NCBI GenBank assembly: GCA_965112735.1
Contig: OZ218962.1
Location: 310,001 to 374,000, forward strand
Length of the DNA stretch: 64,000 nucleotides
Reading direction: 5' to 3'
Source of the DNA: Phaeosaccion multiseriatum
Lineage: Eukaryota > Protista > Ochrophyta, other classes
In this document: piece by piece, positions 1-25,765 of the stretch
Position numbering within the stretch: position 1 is the stretch's first letter
How the letters are laid out: every line of letters begins with the position of its first letter
The notes under the pieces: model-generated
Database searches by the model: none
Seen by the model: the letters and a program-made list of their open reading frames with translations, nothing else
Told to the model about the DNA's origin: nothing
Translations under genes and position numbers: made by a program

Positions 1-539
1 GCATTGGTCAGGGCCTGCCCTATCCGACGCACCATGCCGCCCGTCGCCTGCTCGATCTCCAAGCGAGCTGAGGCGTCCGGCACAAAGGACGCCTTGCTGG
101 CATTCCAGATGAGCGGGGTCGTCAGCGAGCCGTCGTACTCGACAAACAAGGCGGATTCATCACCACCCGTGCCGCTGCTGGTACTGCTATCAATGCTACT
201 ATTGGCGGCTCCACTGCGGCTGCCTCCACTGCTGCTGCTGCTGCTGCTGCTGCCCTCGCTACCACTACTTCTTGTCCTCTTCCTCCCGCTCGTCGCGCTG
301 TAGTCGCCATCAGATGATGACGAGGCATTCCTGCGGCTGCCGGCAAAGGGCCGCCTCCCGCGTCGCCGTCTCCCCTGTTGACACACTTGCGCATGCTTAC
401 CGGGTCCCGCTGGCAGGCCTCTCGCAAGTCTATCACCTAGAGCACGGCGCTGAGAGTGCGTCGGTAGAAGAAGCCCGGAGGTGCTACCACCACAGAGCAC
501 AGCGACGGAGAAGAGGTGCGCACCTTTTCGAGCCCCCAT
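1..539 (-). CDS. 5' part of a probably plastid-targeted protein running off the window edge (possibly RUS1/DUF647 family)
   Basis: Open frame from ATG at 539: MGARKGAHLFSVAVLCGGSTSGLLLP (signal-like), a Ser/Arg-rich transit-like stretch, then ALFVEYDGSLTTPLIWNASKASFVPDASARLEIEQATGGMVRRIGQALTNA. No stop before position 1, so it is absent from the ORF track. The family guess is weak. Confidence 0.45.
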   Translation of the reverse strand, partial: MGARKGAHLFSVAVLCGGSTSGLLLPTHSQRRALGDRLARGLPAGPGKHAQVCQQGRRRRGRRPFAGSRRNASSSSDGDYSATSGRKRTRSSGSEGSSSSSSSSGGSRSGAANSSIDSSTSSGTGGDESALFVEYDGSLTTPLIWNASKASFVPDASARLEIEQATGGMVRRIGQALTN

Positions 540-963
540 CCTCCCCATCTGAGCCCCGCTGGCCGCGCTACTCCTCTCCCCGCTCCTTCCTTCCTCTTGC
601 AGTGGGGAAGCGTCTGCCTCTCCCACAGAGGAGCTACCGCTGTTGCTGCTGTGCGTTTCTCCAAGGACAAGCGAGGGACCAAGTCCTCTTTATTTCTCTC
701 TTTGGCCTGGCCTGTCCCTGCCCCATTGCATGGAACCCATCATCTTCGCCTTACAAAGAGGGGAAGACGCTTCTCAGAGGCTGCTACCTCTTGCCGCTCC
801 CGTAATAAATTTAATATGAGCCGAGTCCACAAAAAAAAAAGGGAAAGGGGTACTTCGTATGCCTCTAATTTTTTTCGGCTGTGCCCCCTCCCCTCTTCTT
901 GTCGTATCGTGGTTCCTCCCTGCTCTCTACAACTTCCCTTTTCGAGACACCTTACCTAAAGCC

Positions 964-1918
964 ATGGCAGACCTCGACAAGAAGGAGAGCGGCGAGGGGA
1001 AGACCGCGGCCGTGGACGGCGAGGGGTGAGTTACCGTCGCCCACAATGTCCAAAATCTTGTTTGAAATTGAGGACGGTCAAGGGCAAGGACAGCAGCATG
1101 GCTTGCCCTCTAACGTGTAGGGGCTGGACTCCCTTTGCCTCTTTCTGTCCTACTCAAGCATTTGCACTGCTCCTTGCCTAAGCGCGACCCCTCTGTACTC
1201 TTGTCACGGACCTTGCTGCAACTTCACAGCAAGAAGGTTGCGGCGGAGGAGAAGGCAGACACCGAAAAGGCCTCGGCCGCTCCCGCTTCCGAGCCCTCCG
1301 AGAAGTCCTCCGAGAAGCCGCTCTCGGAGCTCAAGAAGCCTCCTCCTGCAGCGGCAGGAGCTCGGGCAGCAGGGGCTGATGATGACGACGATGACGATGA
1401 TGAGGAGGAGGAGGAAGGCGGCAACGACAGCGACGACGGGGGGAATAGGAAGCGAAGCGCAGAAGCCGCTGCGGCAGGGGCATCCTCGTCGGCGAAGAAG
1501 AAGAAGAAGAGCAAGAAGGGGGACGACGGAGACGACTCCGACGTGTCGGACACACTACACGATATCTCGGAAGGTGGGAGCTGAGGCATGTTCGGGTTGC
1601 AAAGAGGGCCGCCTTAACACGAAGTAGCGATGCATGGGGAACGTGGCTGCCTTGGTTTTGCCTTCGTCGTCTTCTCTCGCTTTGCCCCAACCTCCCCACG
1701 GGCCATGGATCTTACCTCCAATTCCGTGCCTGTTGGTGCTGTTTGTGCCCCCCTCCCCTCTTCTCTCCAACCCAGACGAGATCGGCGCCTTAGACCAGAG
1801 CAACATTCTGCCCCGCACCTCTCGACGGAAAGCCGCCACCGTCGCCAACCTTATGAACGCTTCGGAGGTGGCCAAGTACGAGGACAGCGACGAGTCGGAG
1901 CAAGAGTTCGATCTTTGA
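964..1918 (+). CDS. Acidic histone chaperone with CHZ (Chz1-like) domain; 3 exons
   Basis: Exons 964-1025, 1230-1573 and 1776-1918 join in frame through GT-AG introns. The product has an acidic D/E tract, a basic KKKKKSKK patch and DISEDEIGALDQSNILPRTSRRK, resembling the CHZ motif (E-I-D-x-S-N-I-x-x-R-T-R). Confidence 0.75.
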
Positions 1919-3425
1919 AGTAGAGGAGCTCGACCTTTGAAGTAAAGGAGTTCCGCCTTTGAAGTAGTGTAGTGCGAGGCAGAGCCGGAGTTGTGGTCTG
2001 TGGAGTAGTAACGAGGGTGACACTGATGCGACTCTATCGGGCTCGGTAGGAGGGGAGAAGACGGGACTGGACAGAATAGGAGGAGAGGGGGGAGGAGTAC
2101 GAACGAAAAGTAGCTCCATCAGAGACCCACCCAGCGCCACCACCATCAGCAGCAGCAGCAGCAGCAGCAGCAGGACCGCCATCGGACGGGACATGGCATC
2201 TGCTATTGCTATTGCAGTGCCATTGCAGGAGAGGAGGGCGTTGGTGCTGCCGCTGCTGCTGATGCTCCGTACGTGATGGAGCGCGGGGTGAAAACGCGGG
2301 GGGTGGCGCTCCCCCCTGCGGCAGCGGGTCGAGAGCTGTCGAGAGTGTCGAGAGCAAGTGCTCGCCATCACATTGGGGCCCAAATTGGCCCTTGCGCGGT
2401 CTTGTGATGGGCGGTATCGGTCCTGCTGAGGCCGAAAAGCTTCTCTCCAGGCTCTTGTTCTGAATGGGCCTTGGGGCAGGGGGCGCGAGAGGAGCCTACT
2501 GCGTCCAGTTTAGGTGCAGAGTCATGTGTCGACCCCCCATCTCGATCTCAAGCTCAAACCTCAATAGGAGTAGGAGGCCCAGCATAATAACGGCTTGCCT
2601 GGGATACTCGACACGCTGTTCTCGGCCAAGGCCCTACTTCGCCCCCTCTCTTGAGGACCTCTCTTCTCCCTCTCCTCCCTCTTCTCCCTCTGCTCCCTCT
2701 CCTCCCTCTCTCGGTGCTCGGCAGGAGAAAGCCGCACAAGTGGAGACCCCTCCTGCATGCAAACAGCCGCCCTGACGGCCCTGACTGGGGCACAAAGCCA
2801 ACAAGTCCCAAGCGAGACAAGACACCACACGAGAGCACGCTTCCCCGTACAGTTACATCAGTATTACATACACTATTGTAGCGGCATGGCAAAGTGCCGC
2901 TGCCTCGACAGGAGCCAGGAGCGCAGACACACACACACACACACACACACGCGTCCATGTTCTGCCTAAAACCCCCTCCCATCCGATCCACTCCCTGCCT
3001 CGCGGTCCTGCTCCTCCCCACTGCCTTACTGCTGCCTGCGTTGCGGCTGTGCCTTGCTGCTCCTGGCGGAGTCAGTGCTGAGCACAGACGCAAAGGTGCC
3101 CCCGCAGAGACGCGACGGACGGCACACAGACAGGCCTTTCTCCTCCTCCTCGTGTTGGTCGCACGTCTGAACCACATGTGAGTGTAGAGATGGGCCGTGC
3201 GTCTCAGCCCCTCCTCCCGCCTGCCGCCGTGCCTCAGTCTCAGCCTGGTCGGAGGTCGAAGGAAGAACAAACAACACCGCGCGCCCCCCGCTGCGGCTGC
3301 TGCGGCTGCTGCGGCTGGTACACCACTGGTGGCGCTTCTCAGCAGCTGACGATAAGAGATGTCGATATCCGACTGGCCTATCCCTTCTTGGCCTTGCCGA
3401 CCCCCTTCTTGCTCTATAACTACTT

Positions 3426-17040: not shown

Positions 17041-17270
17041 GCGTGTGAGGTCCAGCGGAAGCAAGGACGTGCGCGGAGGGCTTTGGCTGAGCAGCGGTGC
17101 GGCTTGGGAGGCGATGTGCTGCATAGCGGTGGTAGAGGGGTGGGAGCTCGTGCTTCCAAGGCCCTGGGCGGTTACTTTCCTCGTGTGGCGTGCGGGGCTG
17201 TGTGTTGGCGGGCGTATCGAATAGCGAAGGACAGAAGAGTCCCACACATACACATCGACCCCTGACGTGC

Positions 17271-17412
17271 TATTATGCTATCTGCTATCGCCGGCGCCAG
17301 CCGGCGTGCTATCTGCTATTGCCGGCGCCAGCCGGCGTGCTATGTGCTATCGCCGGCGCCAGCCGGCGTGCTATGTGCTATCGCCGGCGCCAGCCGGCGT
17401 TTTGTGCTATTC
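17271..17412 (+). repeat. Left subterminal tandem repeats (~31-bp unit, gctatcgccggcgccagccggcgtgctatct/gt, 4-5 copies)
   Basis: Directly visible tandem array adjoining the left TIR. Confidence 0.9.
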
Positions 17413-17664
17413 GCCCCCCCGGGGTCGGGGGTGGGAGGGTGCGCGTGCGGGGGGCTAGGAGCGGAGGAAGCAACTCACACGTGTTTCATTGCCATTAATT
17501 CGCGTCAGTTCTTGTATAGTATGCCTAAGGGAGTATATCAAGGTCCACCCTCTGCCTGGCCTGGCTGACCTGCTGCCCGTGCACCCCTACCTCTCCGCCC
17601 TGTGATTGACTGGCTCTCCGCTAGCTCAGCCGGCGGACGGCCCGATCGACATTGTGCTCGCCAA

Positions 17665-20600
17665 TCAGTCACTTTTACCACTAGGGCAGGCAGCATTCAC
17701 TCCGTCACAATACCAGTCCCCTTCAGGAAGCGTAGAGAGGGGAGGGGTCAGGCAGTACGTGTGAAACTCCTCATCGCAGCCGTCACATAGCAACATTTTG
17801 TCGTGGTCAACATCTTTCTGACAGACTAGACATGCAGTGGCTTCGCTGGAGCTAGAGTCTGCTGCTTTTGCCGTGCCACGAGACAAAGCCCCATAACTCT
17901 CGGGCTTGTTTACCGTGCGCCCACGTGAGGACATCGCCCCCACCACCTTTCCGATGATGTTCTTGCGCAGTGTTCTCAGGTTCAGCGCCTCCTGCTCGCC
18001 ATCACTGCTATCGTCCTCAGACATGTCCTCTCCCATGTGCACGCTTGGGTCGGGGGGGGCGTATCCCATCGCCTTGGCCACCTCTTGGCCCTCCGCCTCT
18101 CTGTTGACAATCTGCTTGCACTCCTCGTGCTGCTCCTCCGTGATGGCAAACCTCCGAAGCCTTCTCTGCGCGCACACCCCTCCTGAAGCTGCATGTGAGC
18201 CTTCGATGTACATTGCTTCGTGGTAGCGGGGCAATGCGCCATAAATGGCAGCACAAGACACAGAAGCCTCTTTCCCGCCGTCGACTTCGTAGACGACTGC
18301 TGCAGCCCCATCCCCGTCCTGGGACTCGTCGGTAGAGTCCTGTTCAGCGACGTGAAAGTATGAAACACCAGGCTTTGCCGGAACCACCTTCTGCTTGGAG
18401 CCTCGTCCCTTCTTCGAGACGATCACCTCCTTCCGAAGATCGACGCGAAGCTGTGCAAGAAAAAAGCTCTCCTCCGACCCCTTGTCTGCCCTGACTATCA
18501 CAACGTCATTTGCCCTGTAGAGAATGCGAGTTCGGACGGATTCACCGGTCTTCCGTCCTTTCTGTCCGCGCTTCCTCGCTCCCGAGCTCTCATGCAAGCG
18601 CGACAGGTATCCACTCGGGTCGTTGCTTTGCGCAGAGTTGGGAGCAAACGCCACCGAACGCGGGGCCGCTCCAACATTGTACTTCCTCTTGTTGGTTACA
18701 CGCTGCTGCGGAACCTTCCTAAGACGAGCCGCCGCATTGCGAAGCGTCTGCGTGTCCTTCTTGCGCTGCTTCCGTTGCCCTTCGTCAAGCTTCTCCGCTA
18801 CCCTTGGTCGCTTCAACACGGGTGAAGCCACCAATCTGCTCTCGTTTTGCTCCAGCTGGTATCCCGCCCTGAGCTTTCGACCGCTGCTGTTGACGCTGCT
18901 TGTGCAGTAGGCAAAACCCATGCTGGGGTTGGCCTTCTTCGCAGCCTCAAGCATCACAAGGCCCCTTCTTCGGGCATACTCAAGAGCGTCTGGAACATCC
19001 TGGCGGCCTTCCCTTTGCTTCGTGAAGAAAGTCTCAACATTGAGGGTCAAAACGCTCCTCATCTGCATCTTCTCCACGATGCCGCGAGGCACTCCCTGCT
19101 GACGGAAATGAGCGAGGAAGCATCAAGCAAGGAGCGAACAGCGAAGCCGTGAGACGAAAGGGCAAGGCTGATTTCCAAACGCACGCGCCCACGGACACGG
19201 ACATTTTTACTCACGCACTCACGCACACACACGCACACAGCCATGGGGAGCACCCCCTTCTCACCTCTGCAAGCATCCGATGTAGCATCCGAGGTAGTGC
19301 CTGCAGGCTCGCCTTGATAGCACCTCGAACTTCGCGTGATGGCATTCCTTCAGGGCCCTGGAGAGAGACCAGGGATTTGCCTGTGGCAGCTGATATCGCT
19401 TTCCCCATGTGACTGAGAGCCAAGTCGACCACATGAAGCTTGGCAATGCTCTCCTCCATCGTGCGTGCGTTGTTTTGCATGTCTTTGCCATTCTCATCCA
19501 AGTCTTCGCCCTGGAGCTGATACGCCTCACTCAACATCCGTTGTAGTGGGATGAGGTGCTGGGCGTAGACGTAGCAGTCCGAGATCATTCGAATGCACTG
19601 GTTTCCAGTGTCGGACAAGAAGAAAACGTTGTACACGAAGCAGCCGAACGTAGGTCTGAACAAAGGTACTTTCGATGCCGTACCGCTGGCAGTGCTCTCT
19701 CCGGGTTCTGTGTTTCCCTGTCCGCCCATCAGCACGGATGATCCCTTCCAGCTTAGCACCCCACTGTCACGACGAAGGAGAACCTTGACAAGCGCATGCA
19801 AACCTTCATCTAGCATGAGGATGACGATCATATCTTCATCATCGTATGCACCGGGTGGGGCCAACGTGAGTCCACAAGGCTGAGTCCCCACGTGAGACTT
19901 CACGCACGTGAGGTGTGCGCGCCTTGGCTTCTCAACAGTACCATCTTCCTCGTCATCAGTCAGAGCCATGAGTGTATCTCCGTCATTGCCACTGCCACCC
20001 TCTGGTCCTCCGGCACGTTCCACATTGCCCTCCCAGACAAAAAGCGAGCTGTCGGCGATGCAGGCAACGCAGTCATGCGAGAGTGCTGTGAGGCCCGCAG
20101 GTCCCTTGGGTAGGTCACACAGCTTCTCGCTCACAGGTGCAAAAGGGTTGCCAGCGTCAAATGAGAGCCGGTGTAGTGCTCCCCCCCCGCCAGGTTCCTC
20201 TTGGGTGACAAAGAGGTCGAACGCGCGCTCAGAGGACACGGCAAGCGCAATGGCAACGGGGCAACGGATGCCCTCCTCTTCTCTCTCCTCGAGGACATTC
20301 TCCTCAGAAGTGCAACGCTCCTGGATCCGACGGACCAAGGGCACTGCCTTCAAATTCAAATGCCGTTGCTGAGTCTGTCTCCCCCGACCACGCGCTGCTA
20401 CATGCCCGTCCGGTTGCTGGTCGTCGTCATCATCATCGTCGCCCTCCTCCGCCGCCGCGCGGGGTCCCCTGTTTCCTGGAAGAGCGGCCAGCACATGCAC
20501 CACCCAAATCTGATTCGCTCCACTGTCACACATGTACACGTAGTCGCCAACCACGACGAGAGACCCAAGACTCTGGAAGCAGTCGTCTCGCAGAACAACC

Positions 20601-22947
20601 TCTGTGGTACAAGGCACATGATGGGCCTTGAGCATGCGCAGATGCCTGCCTGAACGATCGGCGTTGAAGATCATGCCAGAGCCATGATGGTAGCCCATAC
20701 CAGTCGGCTTCTGAGTCTGCGAGGCCATGTTCTGATGCCAGAAACCCCACGGCTCCGGGCACACGGTCACCCCCACGAGAGCACGGCGCTTCTCCCGCTC
20801 CTCCTCTGAGAGTAGAGCCAACTGCAGAGACGCCGTCGTAACAGCGATTGCGCTCTCCACTGAGAAAGGATCCTTGTTTTCAATGGCGTCAAGGCCAACA
20901 TTGGCTTGTACTGCTTCACTTCGAGCCGGGTCCAGATCGTGGAATCTGGCGCGAAGAGTTCGCAGTCCGACTAGCCAGCCCTGGCAGACGACCCACCAAT
21001 TGAATGTCGTAGCACGAACACACTTTACAAGGTGAGCCCCGTCAGGCAGTGCCTCATACCACCCCAGGGGGTCGTCCTCTCCGAGGGTTCTTGCCGCCAT
21101 TTTCCGAATGAAGGCAAGCTGTGCGCCATTACAGTCTGTTGAGATGCACAATGGTCGGAGACTCTTGCACACGAGCCCTTTCCTCTTGCACCTCGAGCAG
21201 ACTCTGCTGGAGAACTGAGTCGCGCAAACGCACTCACTTTCACCGCAAGGACCCTCCCCTCCGGTGGGACAAGCTTGGTGGCAATCACACGCCTCGCCCA
21301 TCTCCACCCACGAGGGGTTCTCCCCCGTCAGAATCCGCTGCCAGAAAAGCTCGAGACAAGGGATGCAAACACGCAGCGCCTTCATGATTTCGGTCACGCT
21401 CGCGGCAACACTTTTGTAGTCACCCCCTGCGGTGTGAAGCTGAAAACCGATGGAGCCCGTGTATGCCCCTTTCAGATCCATCATCATAACTTCCATCATC
21501 TCGGAACCCAGCTTAGGTGCGTCCTCGTCTCGCAGCTGGAACAGAACGAGTAGCGATAAGGGAGGGTTGACAGGAGGCGAAGCAAAGGCGGGGCTGCAGC
21601 GTGAGCGAGCGAGCGAGGAGGCGTGATTAAGATTGACGATGGATCAACAGTGATTCTGCCCCGAAAGATCAGTGGGAAGGAGGGGACGCCACGCACCTGA
21701 GCATCAGACTTTTCCAGTATTGCCTTCGCCTGCTCCAGTGTTGTATTTCCAAACTGATGTGCATTGCCCCAATTGGTTTGGCTGGTTGTATCAGTATGAT
21801 GGCCCTTGGCAATGACGAAGCCATCCATTTTGACAGTCACGGGAACCACAATCTTCTCGTTGCCTTTGTCGCCAAGAGTGTAGGCTTGGTCGGCACAGAA
21901 GCGGGCGAAGACATTGACGACGTTGATAATGTCTTCGACTTGCAGACCGTACCTCTTGATTAGGCCAGGCCTGCGCCTAATGAGTGCTCTCGGATGAAAG
22001 CCGCCTGTGTTCGCCCTGCGGAAGTAGTCCTTCATGGCCTGGTCCCTGGAGACGTTGGGGCCACGAACCTTCTTTCTGCGGGGTGCCCCATAGGAGAGCA
22101 TGGAGCATGCTGAACCAAATACGTTCTGCTGGGTCTCATTAAACTGTCGCAGCGTCTCGTAGCCATTGAGCTGCTTGCTCGCGGCCACAGTCTGACGCCT
22201 GGACCAAAGGCCGCTGTTCATGACCCAACGATGCACCGTTTGATACATGAAGTGACTCCGAGTAAAGTGCCCTCGATCAAGATGGAATTGGATCGCAAAG
22301 GGAACAATGTCGACATCGTTTACGTCCCGGGTAAGCTCTACACGCCCGCTGTCCGCGTCTTCCGTCACAGCCACCCGCCCATGGTCTTCTTCTGTCGCGG
22401 ACGAGCCCGCGGCGCCCATCGCCTTTGTTTGTGGCCAAATGTGAAACGGCAGAATCTTTATTGGCTTACAGCTGGCTGGGCCCATGGCTGGGCCCCACTG
22501 GTTCAAAAGTCCTTCATGTCTGGCCGCGATGGAGGGAGGAGTTGGGGGGGGGGGGGCGACTACTACAACAGCAGGAGAGGCACGCCAAGTCCAGTTGGCA
22601 GCAGGAGTCGGAGCCGGGAGAAGGCCCCTGAGAGGGCGAGGAGAGGGAGGAGTGCCAGCAGGAGTTGGAGCAGGGAGAAGCACAGTGAGAGGAGGAAGCG
22701 AGGGAGAAATGCCAGCAGGAGTCAGAGTAGGGGGAAGGACACCGAGAGGAGGAGGGCAGGGAGAAGTACCAGCAGGAGTCGGAGCCGACCCAGATCCGGA
22801 GGAGGAGGAGGGAGGAGGGAAGGAGAAAAGGGTCGAAGCAAAGGGAGACGGGGCCGCAGTCCCAGCGAAAGAGGATTCCCAGCAGGCGCGAGGAAAATGC
22901 GTCGGAACCAAAGTCCCAGCGACAGGGGAGTACGCCGAAGCAGCCAT
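17665..22947 (-). CDS. Multi-domain P-like DDE transposase with Cys-rich insert, NHL-like beta-propeller insert, BAH-like segment and C-terminal PHD finger; 3 exons
   Basis: Exons 22947 (or 22485)-21697, 21535-19265 and 19095-17665 join in phase 0 through GT-AG introns. Motifs: VTVKMDG (D at 21823-21825), CISTDC (D at 21134-21136), PDGAHLVKCVR (DxxH), KDPFSVESA, LTLNVETFF..R....P..LEY (E at 19033-19035). PHD: CLVC..LLCDGCDEEFHTYCLTPPL..PEGDWYC. Confidence 0.8.
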
Positions 22948-24445
22948 TCACAACACGCTTCTCACGAGCTGGGGTGGGAGGAGGGGGGGCGGCTTGAGGA
23001 CACCTATCTCCAGAGTACGGCAACCTTGGCATCGTCTTCTGAGGCACAAGACTTCGATTATGCCTTGCCCCTGAGTGCAGGGATGGGACAGGCAAAACCT
23101 ACCCCTCTCATGTTCGCGCATGTGGGGACATTTCCAAGAGGATGCCTCAACCCCGTCGAGGCTGATTTCAGTCTCGGCACATCGGTGTCCTGCAACACGA
23201 CCGAGCTCTTCGAGACCTTGCCCTACACGTTCCAGCTGGCTAATGAAGACAAGCGATTCTCCAGCTTCAAGGCCTTCCGTGGACATTTGACCAGCGAATT
23301 GCTCTTTCAGACGGAACAAAAGAAGAACGACATCACGATCAGAGCCTCCACGGCATTCAGACGTGGCAGAGGGTTGGATACAATCCGCGACGACGTCTCC
23401 CTGCGCCGCGTGGTACGTGTCGGGTACAACTGCCTCTCGATGTTTGTGCATTGTCTGCTACGGCAGCAACCCTTTCTTAAACCCGCCCCCCCCGCCCCTC
23501 TCTGTCTCTTTCTCCAACACACACCCAATACAGGTGCGCTCGTTCTACACTTTCCCTCCGGGCCGTATCGATCCCGACAAACGGTGGAGACTGGATCTGT
23601 ACTGCGAGCTACGCCCGAAATCAGGGGCGAGACAGCAGGAGAACGTGCAAATTTGCCTGTCTTTCCCTACCCAATCTCTGGACAGCGCCACAGATTTTTC
23701 GACCCATACCCCACCCAAGAAGGCAGGTCATCGAGGTGGTGCTGCCCGTGTCAGTGAGACCACCAGTGATAGTGAGGGAGAGAGTGCCGGCGGGACGAAA
23801 GGCGGGAAGGCGGGGCAAGAGGGGGCACTGACGAAGAAGGCGAAGAGCTGGCTCCACGCGCAAGGAACCAAGTTCTTTTATCTTTTGCGGGAAATGCCTG
23901 ATGTGGAGATGCAAACTCTCAGCGGAAGCAAGGTCGGTGATGCAGCAAGCTTCGTGAAGATCCATACGCCAGCTTTGATTCAGCTTGAGGCCAAAGCGAA
24001 CTTCTCCATCAGACACGCCAGAACATCATTGGATATGCTGGTATCTGTTGTGTGCACCAGGCCTGCTTGTCAGAGCGCCGGGAAGGGCAAGTACAAGCCT
24101 CAGTGGACTCATTTGTCTGGCGTTAAGCGCCACAGAGACTCCCACTCATCGAGCGGTCAGAAAAGCATGCAAGCTGCACTCTCTCACTTCCTACTGAAGA
24201 CGGCGTTGGGGAAGCAGGAGGAGGAGGAGCAGGAGGAGGAGGAGGAGGAGGAGGATGATGGTGGTGGTGATGATGATGATGAGGAGGAGGAGGAGGAGGA
24301 GGAGGAGGAGGAGCAGGAGGGGGAGGAGGAGGAGCAGGAGGAGGAGGAGGAGGAGGAGCAGGAGGGGGCAGCAGCCCTTCTTCCCACCAGAAGAAAAGCA
24401 GGGCCATGCCTGCGGCACAATCAGTGGCCGAAGCTGAGCAGCTGA
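22516..24445 (+). CDS. Transposon accessory protein, N-terminal part: RS-rich repeats, unknown domain, C2H2/BED-like finger, acidic tract
   Basis: ATG at 22516. A GT-AG intron at 23413-23533 joins the 22231-frame and 23363-frame ORFs in phase 0. CTRPAC...HLSGVKRHRDSH is a candidate finger, followed by poly-Glu. Confidence 0.55.
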
Positions 24446-25317
24446 CAGGGGACATGAAGGCGAGGCTGCTTGTCCTCGGCGCTGAGCAGGACATGCACAA
24501 GGAAAAGGGGGAGTACACCTCCTTCTTTTTGGACGCGATGATGACCACTGTATCCGTGAACGGAAACAGGGCACTACTCCCGTGCGCGTCTCTTGGTCAC
24601 ATTTTCAACCCAGCTGTGGAGAACTCCCCCATGCCCAACGTGTTGGCGACGGCTCCGAAAGGGTTCCTGCCGAAAGGTTACAGGGAGTCTGGTCTTACAA
24701 TGACGAAGTGTGAGCTCCTCGTCCTCCCTGCGAGTTTCAGCGGCCATTTCTCGACTGTCGCTGTCCTTCTACCTACCTCTGCAGCTAGTGACGACGGGGA
24801 GGGTGCTATGGCGTACATTCTGCACTTTGATACGGTCCGAAATGGGCGCCTCGGTCACCACCCTTCGAAGCGAGTGCTCCAAGCGACGCAGGTGTATGTG
24901 GAGAAGGTCATGGAGGACGAAAGAGCCCCTGGGACGGCAGCCCTCCGATTCCGGCAGGTCTTTGTTGGTGTGCCACAGCAGAAGGCCGGCTCGAATTCTT
25001 GCGGTCCGGCAACAGCTCTATTCATGTCGAAATTGGCTGTGGCAGACACCAGCCCCGTGCGCAAAGTGCTCTATGGTGTTGAGCAAGACAACAGCTGGGA
25101 AAGGGACGACGGTGTAGCGATTTTGTCTAGTGCGGCGGGGGCAAAGAAGGAGACCGTGGACCGCTTCTTGGCCGCGTGTGGGCTGCCGTGTCTGACCTGC
25201 GAAGAGTATGAGGCAGAGAGAACTCGCCTCTTTCGGGCGTACCTGAGCTCCGGGATGCGCAACGGTTCCTTGCCCGACGTTTACAACTCGGCCTTGCATA
25301 AGTGCGTCCTGGGTTAG
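24406..25317 (+). CDS. Ulp1/SENP-like (peptidase C48) cysteine protease carried by the transposon
   Basis: Catalytic residues in C48 order: LVLPASFSGHFSTVAV (His), YILHFDT (Asp), VPQQKAGSNSCG (oxyanion Gln and Cys). Confidence 0.8.
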   Translation: MPAAQSVAEAEQLTGDMKARLLVLGAEQDMHKEKGEYTSFFLDAMMTTVSVNGNRALLPCASLGHIFNPAVENSPMPNVLATAPKGFLPKGYRESGLTMTKCELLVLPASFSGHFSTVAVLLPTSAASDDGEGAMAYILHFDTVRNGRLGHHPSKRVLQATQVYVEKVMEDERAPGTAALRFRQVFVGVPQQKAGSNSCGPATALFMSKLAVADTSPVRKVLYGVEQDNSWERDDGVAILSSAAGAKKETVDRFLAACGLPCLTCEEYEAERTRLFRAYLSSGMRNGSLPDVYNSALHKCVLG

Positions 25318-25485
25318 TGAAGGAGAGATGGCTGCCTCGCGAGAGAGGGAGATGGGGGGAGAGGGGAACGCCAAGGTTCGCCCAGTCACCATTGTATTGG
25401 TAATATAAGACTGAAGGCTCGCATACTCTCTGCGCTCGACGTATGCTGATTAGGCAGGCAGCTAGGAGTGGAAAGGCTGTCGCAG

Positions 25486-25615
25486 GGCGTCTGCTATCGC
25501 CGGCGCGACGGGGCGTGCTATCTGCTATTCGCCGGCGCCAGCCGGCGTGCTATCTGCTATTCGCCGAGTGCAAATAGCATGCTATTGGGCGCCGGGGCGC
25601 CCAATAGCATGCTAT
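25486..25615 (+). repeat. Right subterminal repeats plus a perfect 20-bp hairpin
   Basis: gctat(t)cgccggcg units occur in the same orientation as the left array. atagcatgctattgggcgcc-gg-ggcgcccaatagcatgctat spans 25574-25615. Confidence 0.9.
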
Positions 25616-25765
25616 CGCAGATAGCATAATAGCACGTCAGGGGTCGAATACACAGTGGCGCTCAAGAGTTAAGCAAAGTATAGACCTGTAGTCGATGATG
25701 TTAATGACAGTACCGCCGACGAGTACATTGTAGCCGTAGCCGCTCCATCGTCGGCCGTACTGTGG

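Follow-up and report, generated by a model that had tools for sequence, protein, structure and literature searches.

Can a cut-and-paste transposase read the chromatin into which it inserts? We address this question with a locus from the ochrophyte Phaeosaccion multiseriatum, a stretch of 64,000 nucleotides (GenBank assembly GCA_965112735.1, contig OZ218962.1, positions 310,001 to 374,000 of the forward strand) that we call the window and whose own coordinates are used throughout. The window holds a complete DNA transposon of 8,393 bp (17255..25647, minus strand), which bears a transposase gene whose last exon ends in a PHD finger. To our knowledge, almost nothing is known about chromatin sensing by eukaryotic cut-and-paste transposons beyond RAG. 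We propose, with moderate confidence, that exon 3 of this gene encodes the C-terminal third of a cut-and-paste transposase, composed of the Glu motif, a basic segment, a beta domain, an acidic linker and the PHD, and that the PHD would tether or license the transposase through the tail of histone H3. By analogy with known systems, chromatin-guided transposition is plausible because the last exon ends in a genuine histone-reader PHD. According to this model, the finger would bind the N-terminal H3 tail when K4 is unmethylated, and this contact would tether the transposase or the transpososome to nucleosomes outside active promoters. The outcome could be a bias in insertion sites, or a licence for activity such as the one that the RAG2 PHD gives RAG1.

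Is the finger a true PHD? It lies at 17686..17832 on the minus strand (C421 to C469 of the last open reading frame, or ORF) and has a Cys4-His-Cys3 arrangement with a last pair spaced C-x6-C. A Pfam check of the C-terminal region recovered it as PF00628 over residues 421-463 (E 1e-11, 45.1 bits against a cutoff of 24). In a phmmer search of the PDB the top match was KDM5B PHD1 (2mny, 1.3e-13), followed by KDM5A PHD1, Drosophila Lid, BAZ2B and BAZ2A, and several of the top-matching entries are complexes with unmodified H3K4. We modelled the C-terminal part of the protein with AlphaFold (AF2) on a family alignment of 31 rows; a single-sequence model of 309 residues had a predicted local distance difference test score (pLDDT) of 36. 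In the family-based model, the finger is predicted at pLDDT 80-93 and superposes on the PHDs of BAZ2A/B, UHRF1 and KDM5B with target template-modelling (TM) scores of 0.6-0.8 and a root-mean-square deviation (rmsd) of 1.2-2.4 Å. Comparison of the model with the ATXR5 PHD gives a Z score of 8.3. The C-terminal finger is a genuine PHD of the KDM5-PHD1/BAZ2 class, as a preliminary description of the locus had proposed.

Which form of the H3 tail might such a finger read? H3K4me3-reading PHDs carry a cage Trp two residues before the His ligand. In the window PHD, the residue two before the zinc-binding His is Glu, not Trp, and by our reading the finger has no aromatic-cage Trp. The contacts of KDM5B PHD1 with H3 include a salt bridge from D328 to H3R2, a hydrogen bond from D308 to the K4 amine, and E321, Y310, W351 and L325/L326 (PMC4225485). 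When the window finger is aligned to KDM5B, D328 is kept as D437, W351 as W460 and L325/L326 as L434/L435, and E417 stands in the place of D308. The H3K4me0 subclass, to which KDM5 PHD1, BAZ2A/B, BHC80 and AIRE belong, binds the unmodified H3 tail and does so less well once K4 is methylated. The features that mark this subclass appear to be present in the window finger, namely acidic contacts to H3R2 and K4, a Trp in the A1 pocket and no aromatic cage. Most likely, the PHD binds the H3 tail with K4 unmethylated.

Is the finger joined to the catalytic part of the protein? Three long ORFs lie on the minus strand, at 22947-21496, 21499-19211 and 19092-17665, the last of 475 residues. From these we predict a gene of three exons and two canonical GT-AG introns, with both exon junctions in phase 0 and a product of up to 1,651 residues. 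Exon 1 (21697..22947, minus strand) has an uncertain start codon, includes the first candidate catalytic Asp (VKMDGF) and ends at the donor CAG/GTGCGT, which opens intron 1 after 21697. Exon 2 (19265..21535, minus strand; 757 residues) follows the acceptor TTCCAG, which stands before 21535, and carries the second Asp (TDCNGAQ), a PD(2)H motif 31 residues past it, and a large insertion. Intron 2 runs from the donor GAG/GTGAGA after 19265 to the acceptor CGTCAG/CAG before 19098, where exon 3 begins (17665..19098, minus strand; 477 residues and a stop codon). At the exon 2/3 junction, the joined protein aligns with an indel of at most one residue to nine relatives that are continuous there. Moreover, two contigs that carry relatives, L001 and L002, each have one ORF in place of exons 2 and 3, of 1,064 and 1,072 residues respectively, which spans the core, the beta domain and the PHD; L002 has an intron between its equivalents of exons 1 and 2 and none between those of exons 2 and 3. 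Because continuous relatives support this junction, the Glu of NVETFF and the PHD can be placed in one exon and one frame. The preliminary description had placed them together as well, and the peptides that it quoted are found in ORF 19092-17665.

What identifies the gene as a transposase? The putative catalytic Glu helix, TLNVETFFTKQR (19012..19047, minus strand), is a family-invariant T-L-x-V-E-x-F-F-x3-R motif. Its Glu is residue 20 of the last ORF, and at least 90% of rows of the family alignment (A3) keep its T, E and R. The second Asp motif, (L/T)-D-C/N-x-G, is likewise invariant in the family, and the first Asp lies in VKMDGF in the window and in MTDEMML in the relative on L002. D-C/N-x-G, PD(2)H and E-x2-F-x3-R are all kept across the long relatives. 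The last of these is reportedly P-like by the signature string of Yuan and Wessler from 2011. Between D(2)H and the Glu helix there is an insertion of about 650 residues in exon 2 (19265-21535, minus strand), for which the leads towards a propeller are weak: an Atlas NHL cluster at 0.82 and a Pfam SBBP match at E 0.11 in one relative. Beyond the Glu helix lies a conserved basic segment (18643..18795, minus strand; family consensus LR..A.LFK.VRQ.RVTDK.KE.VG..P). The signature of the P superfamily is DDE with [C/D](2)H just ahead of the insertion domain (PMC8230255). The element has these features in the form of a DDE and D(2)H motif, together with a 7-bp target site duplication (TSD) and short terminal inverted repeats (TIRs) of 31 bp.

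Searches with profiles and single sequences gave no transposase match. Pfam has no transposase or THAP match at E≤1 for the three exons, 14 relatives gave none at E≤10, and NCBIfam gave no match. No transposase, and no P transposase, was found in the PDB by phmmer with exons 1 and 2 or by the family profile. A word-index protein search returned nothing with exon 2 and only unrelated PHD proteins with exon 3. We therefore assign the transposase role because of the motifs and the position between TIRs with a TSD, and not because of a profile match. We call the transposase P-like by motifs, and not a P member by sequence-profile homology. The gene appears to belong to an unnamed transposase family with P-element-like motifs, in which the catalytic role is predicted from sequence. 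This family is without a Pfam model, and all the relatives that we found are on environmental contigs.

The limits of the transposon are read directly from the DNA. The left TIR (17255..17285, plus strand; 31 bp) matches the right TIR (25617..25647, minus strand; 31 bp) perfectly, and the 7-bp TSD ATACACA (unstranded) is present at 17248..17254 and again at 25648-25654. The window has exactly two copies of a 19-nt terminal sequence, inverted relative to each other. We also used four public sequencing runs, all from one sample and apparently of DNA. Their contigs span the entire stretch without joints, and many different flanks abut 17255 in them. The termini and subterminal repeats are covered about 20x as deeply as the interior, and the internal depth is about 5-9x that of a unique flank contig, depth not being equal to copy number. 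Our reading is that these data suggest a multi-copy family in which a few full-length, near-identical copies stand beside many short relatives; the short, non-autonomous relatives are proposed because of the depth of about 20x at the subterminal repeats. The transposon is intact; its TIRs match perfectly, its exons are fully open, and it was apparently active in recent times. Its surroundings are eukaryotic, with a GC content of about 0.6, GT microsatellites and GT-AG introns. Just inside both TIRs are arrays of a subterminal repeat with a unit of about 32 nt (GCCGGCGCCAGCCGGCGTGCTATNTGCTAT and variants), at 17286-17400 and 25480-25616, which are probably transposase binding sites.

How widely is the PHD shared within the family? 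A HMMER scan of 1.84 billion representatives, with the last ORF without its PHD as the query, gave 27 relatives at E 4e-26 to 8e-4. Those named P0012, P0015, P0010 and P0009 come from one sample of the Joint Genome Institute (JGI; 3300045993), where they lie on short contigs whose genes were called in prokaryote style. A PHD is present at the same position in 3 of the 14 relatives with known C-termini, P0012 (1,064 residues), P0015 (1,072 residues) and P0013 (482 residues), which have 25-33% overall identity. Eleven relatives with called C-termini (P0009, P0010, P0016, P0017, P0018, P0020, P0023, P0026, P0027, P0030 and P0032) have Lys/Arg-rich ends and no PHD. The idea that homologues keep the fusion thus holds for three relatives and fails for 11. 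No Pfam domain is recorded for seven more proteins closely related to P0020, and the contigs of P0010 and P0009 have no PHD in the 300-425 nt past the stop codon. Searches of metagenome contigs with single proteins gave no further related loci.

In trees of the shared region, all four rows with a PHD lie within one half of the family, interspersed with PHD-less rows. The distribution of the PHD needs at least three changes, and no bootstrap tree unites the PHD rows as one clade. The PHD is a patchy accessory, probably lineage-specific and gained or lost more than once. The window PHD is 55-61% identical to cellular BAZ/KDM5-type PHDs and 39-44% identical to the other PHDs of the transposase family. 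More tentatively, and with considerable doubt, we suggest that the protein might be a single-chain counterpart of RAG1 plus RAG2, a DDE transposase with its own propeller, a beta domain that binds nucleosomes or DNA, and an H3-reading PHD. Chromatin state would then steer or license its transposition, and the family would have taken up the PHD from host chromatin genes on more than one occasion. Repeated capture is suggested because the PHD members are not a clade and because the window PHD is nearer to cellular PHDs than to those of its family. Some 50 residues are too few to distinguish repeated gain from a single gain followed by several losses.

Does exon 3 encode a second chromatin reader? 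Between the basic segment and the acidic linker, ORF residues 186-341 (18070..18537, minus strand) form an all-beta domain of 10 strands and about 135 residues, followed by a helix of 23 residues. In the family-based AF2 model, both are predicted at pLDDT of about 90-96. The sequence YRANDVVIVRADKG...FFLAQL...VSYF falls in a block that is kept family-wide, in about 25 relatives, with the consensus VL.RAGD.V.VKA..G...F.AQL...V......KP.VRYF....G....F.FE....V....I.G......L..F.I.E......R..V. Were this domain a genuine BAH with a histone mark or the nucleosome as its ligand, the exon would hold a BAH-PHD cassette as in ORC1b or EBS, which we consider unlikely. The size and all-beta content of the domain fit a BAH, and BAH is the most frequent class among the fold matches, at Z 4.0-4.8. 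In an exhaustive comparison with model residues 1-138, the BAH of EBS scored Z 4.8 (89 residues, 4.3 Å), that of MTA1 4.7 and PBRM1 BAH1 4.4, and the BAH domains of DNMT1, ASI1, AIPP3, ZMET2 and TNRC18 followed at 4.0-4.1. The BAH matches have an rmsd of 3.3-5.5 Å over 74-97 aligned residues, with six of the eight at 89-97, versus 71-83 for smaller barrels. However, by the comparison's own calibration Z scores under 8 are the noise range of common arrangements, and the BAH matches lie far below that ceiling of about 8, tied with the MRG chromo barrel (4.6), MazF (4.5), PWWP and Agenet.

Sequence searches do not favour a BAH either. The Pfam BAH profile (PF01426) is absent at E≤10 from the window protein and from all of the roughly 25 family members, and the family profile gave no BAH match among PDB sequences. 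Two ESM-Atlas feature searches, one with the beta domain of the window protein and one with that of P0012, returned no usable match, and the shape search was dominated by the PHD. Moreover, the beta domain is present in all PHD-less relatives, and it would therefore belong to the core of the enzyme and not form one half of a reader cassette that was acquired. It is probably a DNA-, nucleosome- or subunit-binding module. The preliminary description had likened this stretch to the start of a BAH domain. What stands of that claim is a real, conserved domain with a predicted fold, for which BAH is the commonest weak match; its identity as a BAH is not established. Similarly, the proposal of a transposase that reads chromatin keeps its TIR- and TSD-bounded element and a PHD that is probably of the H3K4me0 class, and its two-reader form rests on the weak BAH likeness.

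How well, then, does a transposase tethered or licensed through the H3 tail withstand the remaining evidence? Several points weigh against it. H3 reading and targeting are drawn from sequence and analogy, the gene model is known from DNA and homology with predicted expression and splicing, and no Pfam transposase family matches any member. Two of the KDM5B contacts are changed in the window PHD, E321 to H430 and Y310 to T419. Seven of the zinc ligands are canonical, and the eighth follows after six residues, not two (C462-x6-C469). This spacing, to which the preliminary description had rightly drawn attention, amounts to a 4-residue insert that is seen in no other of 10 aligned PHDs, and the model confidence falls to 68 at the last Cys pair. 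The PHDs of P0012 and P0015 end canonically in C-P-x-C, and that of P0013 has Gly at the seventh ligand (DWFGPCC). Finally, the closest relatives (P0009, P0010 and P0017) and most others are without the PHD, which is therefore dispensable for the family.

Some of these points, namely the unique spacing, the lower pLDDT at the tail, the many PHD-less relatives and the damaged ligand of P0013, would also be expected if the PHD were decaying or neutral, with an insert that breaks the second zinc site and leaves the finger nonfunctional. We regard such decay as quite unlikely. The other seven ligands and the H3-contact residues are intact, and an identity of 55-61% to cellular PHDs argues against loss of function. 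Moreover, the element looks recently active, and no variant reaches 10% of reads in the PHD codons.

A functional finger could also have a ligand other than a histone. It would then bind transposon-end DNA or a protein partner, as the cysteine-rich domain (CRD) of piggyBac does. The C-terminal PHD-like zinc domain of piggyBac is a precedent, and the subterminal repeat arrays need a binding module. However, PHD-less relatives must bind their ends without a finger, and the window PHD is a canonical finger that is nearest to H3K4me0 readers and keeps the residues of the R2 and A1 pockets (PMC4225485). We therefore find a non-histone role improbable. Least credible of all is that the gene is a host or captured chromatin gene between TIRs and not a transposase, which the failure of Pfam, NCBIfam and PDB sequences to match any transposase might suggest, but which is highly improbable given D, D, D(2)H and E motifs in P/hAT-type RNase H order and spacing, a gene that fills the element, relatives that are all on environmental contigs, and reads that suggest several near-identical copies.

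Other features of the locus surround the finger and the gene. The acidic linker (17932..18069, minus strand) is predicted to be disordered (pLDDT <50) and is acidic in relatives as well. Next to it, 20-30 residues before the PHD, is an SSRGRxV...Y..L motif (17884..17931, minus strand) that is clearest in this element, P0010, P0012 and P0013; P0015 and P0009 have a looser form of it, and P0010 and P0009 are both PHD-less. We considered homology of the SSRGR region with the segment that precedes PHD1 in KDM5A and rejected it, as the extended alignment gains no score. Across the family, the last ligand pair is damaged in two of four PHDs, those of this element and P0013. A hidden intron after WYC that would restore C-x2-C was also rejected: a GT follows Asp-Gly, but no AG between there and the TIR has a Cys codon after it, and the sole in-frame candidate intron after WYC would be 20 nt long.

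At the other end of the gene, exon 1 opens with about 175 codons (22420-22947, minus strand) of Pro/Ser/Thr-rich repeats (PAPTPAGT-like) that have no counterpart in L002. Translation probably starts at the Met of MGAAGSS, unless an exon further upstream has been missed. Compared with the window, each of the four public runs shows one additional C after 19252, in the GT-rich tract of intron 2, and a G in place of A at 19626, which would turn Val637 of exon 2 into Ala. Either assembly error or strain difference could account for both sites. The extra C does not join exons 2 and 3; it falls in intron 2 and opens into a closed frame. Two further ORFs lie on the plus strand of the element. That at 24406-25317 has zero Pfam matches at E≤10, and hence no Peptidase_C48, and Pfam yields only low-complexity acidic matches for the adjacent ORF at 23363-24445. 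On L002 (7.7 kb, the contig of P0015) there is a divergent ORF of 532 residues at 520-2118 (minus strand), without a Pfam match and unlike the plus-strand ORFs of the window element.

How does this element compare with known systems? RAG1-RAG2 and ProtoRAG share with it DDE cut-and-paste chemistry and a PHD that binds the H3 tail, and they have a six-bladed propeller (PMC4411706, PMC7204232, PMC5175335). In RAG, however, the PHD and the Kelch propeller are on the separate RAG2 subunit, an aromatic cage lets the PHD read H3K4me3, and the transposase is of the Transib type, whereas the window element has one chain, a PHD of the probable K4me0 class and a P-like core. Chromoviruses (Ty3/gypsy) also carry a histone-mark reader at the C-terminus of an integrase, but they are retrotransposons, and their reader is a chromodomain for methylated H3K9. 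This C-terminal chromodomain is taken to steer integration.

The piggyBac CRD, Tetrahymena Tpb2p and Paramecium PiggyMac resemble the window protein in having a C-terminal cross-brace zinc domain on a DDE transposase. The piggyBac CRD binds TIR DNA, and in the domesticated ciliate enzymes the zinc domain has been described as contacting histone H3 or heterochromatin marks. However, the domains of all three are divergent and PHD-like, whereas the window finger is a canonical PHD. The diversity of the piggyBac CRD family is the subject of PMC8086355 and the domesticated ciliate zinc domains are treated in PMC4091102.

Among cellular proteins, KDM5A/B PHD1 and BAZ2A/B match best in sequence (E about 1e-13) and rank near the top in structure, and they differ from the window finger in the C-x6-C spacing, the changes at Y310 and E321, and the transposase context. 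The beta domain is like BAH (PF01426) in being all-beta and about 135 residues long, and unlike it in profile support, with Z 4.0-4.8. The P element has a TSD of 7-8 bp and TIRs of 31 bp. Together with THAP9, it shares with the window protein DDE and D(2)H motifs (PMC8230255) and a large insertion between D(2)H and the Glu helix. However, the window protein matches PHD-related families alone in Pfam and neither the P-element nor the THAP9-like models, no THAP domain was found in it, and its insertion is not a GTP-binding domain. Moreover, its C-terminal beta domain and PHD lack a counterpart in the P element and THAP9.

Our literature search, which covered a limited library and is not proof of novelty, found no published canonical PHD fused to a P-like transposase. 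The element provides a naturally occurring and apparently active transposase that carries a canonical histone-reader PHD in cis, and its PHD-less sister lineages are built-in controls. With the PHD in cis and these lineages available, the question of chromatin sensing can be tested directly. If the proposed role of the finger is true, the element would parallel the RAG2 PHD independently, and transposase tools targeted to chromatin might be modelled on it.

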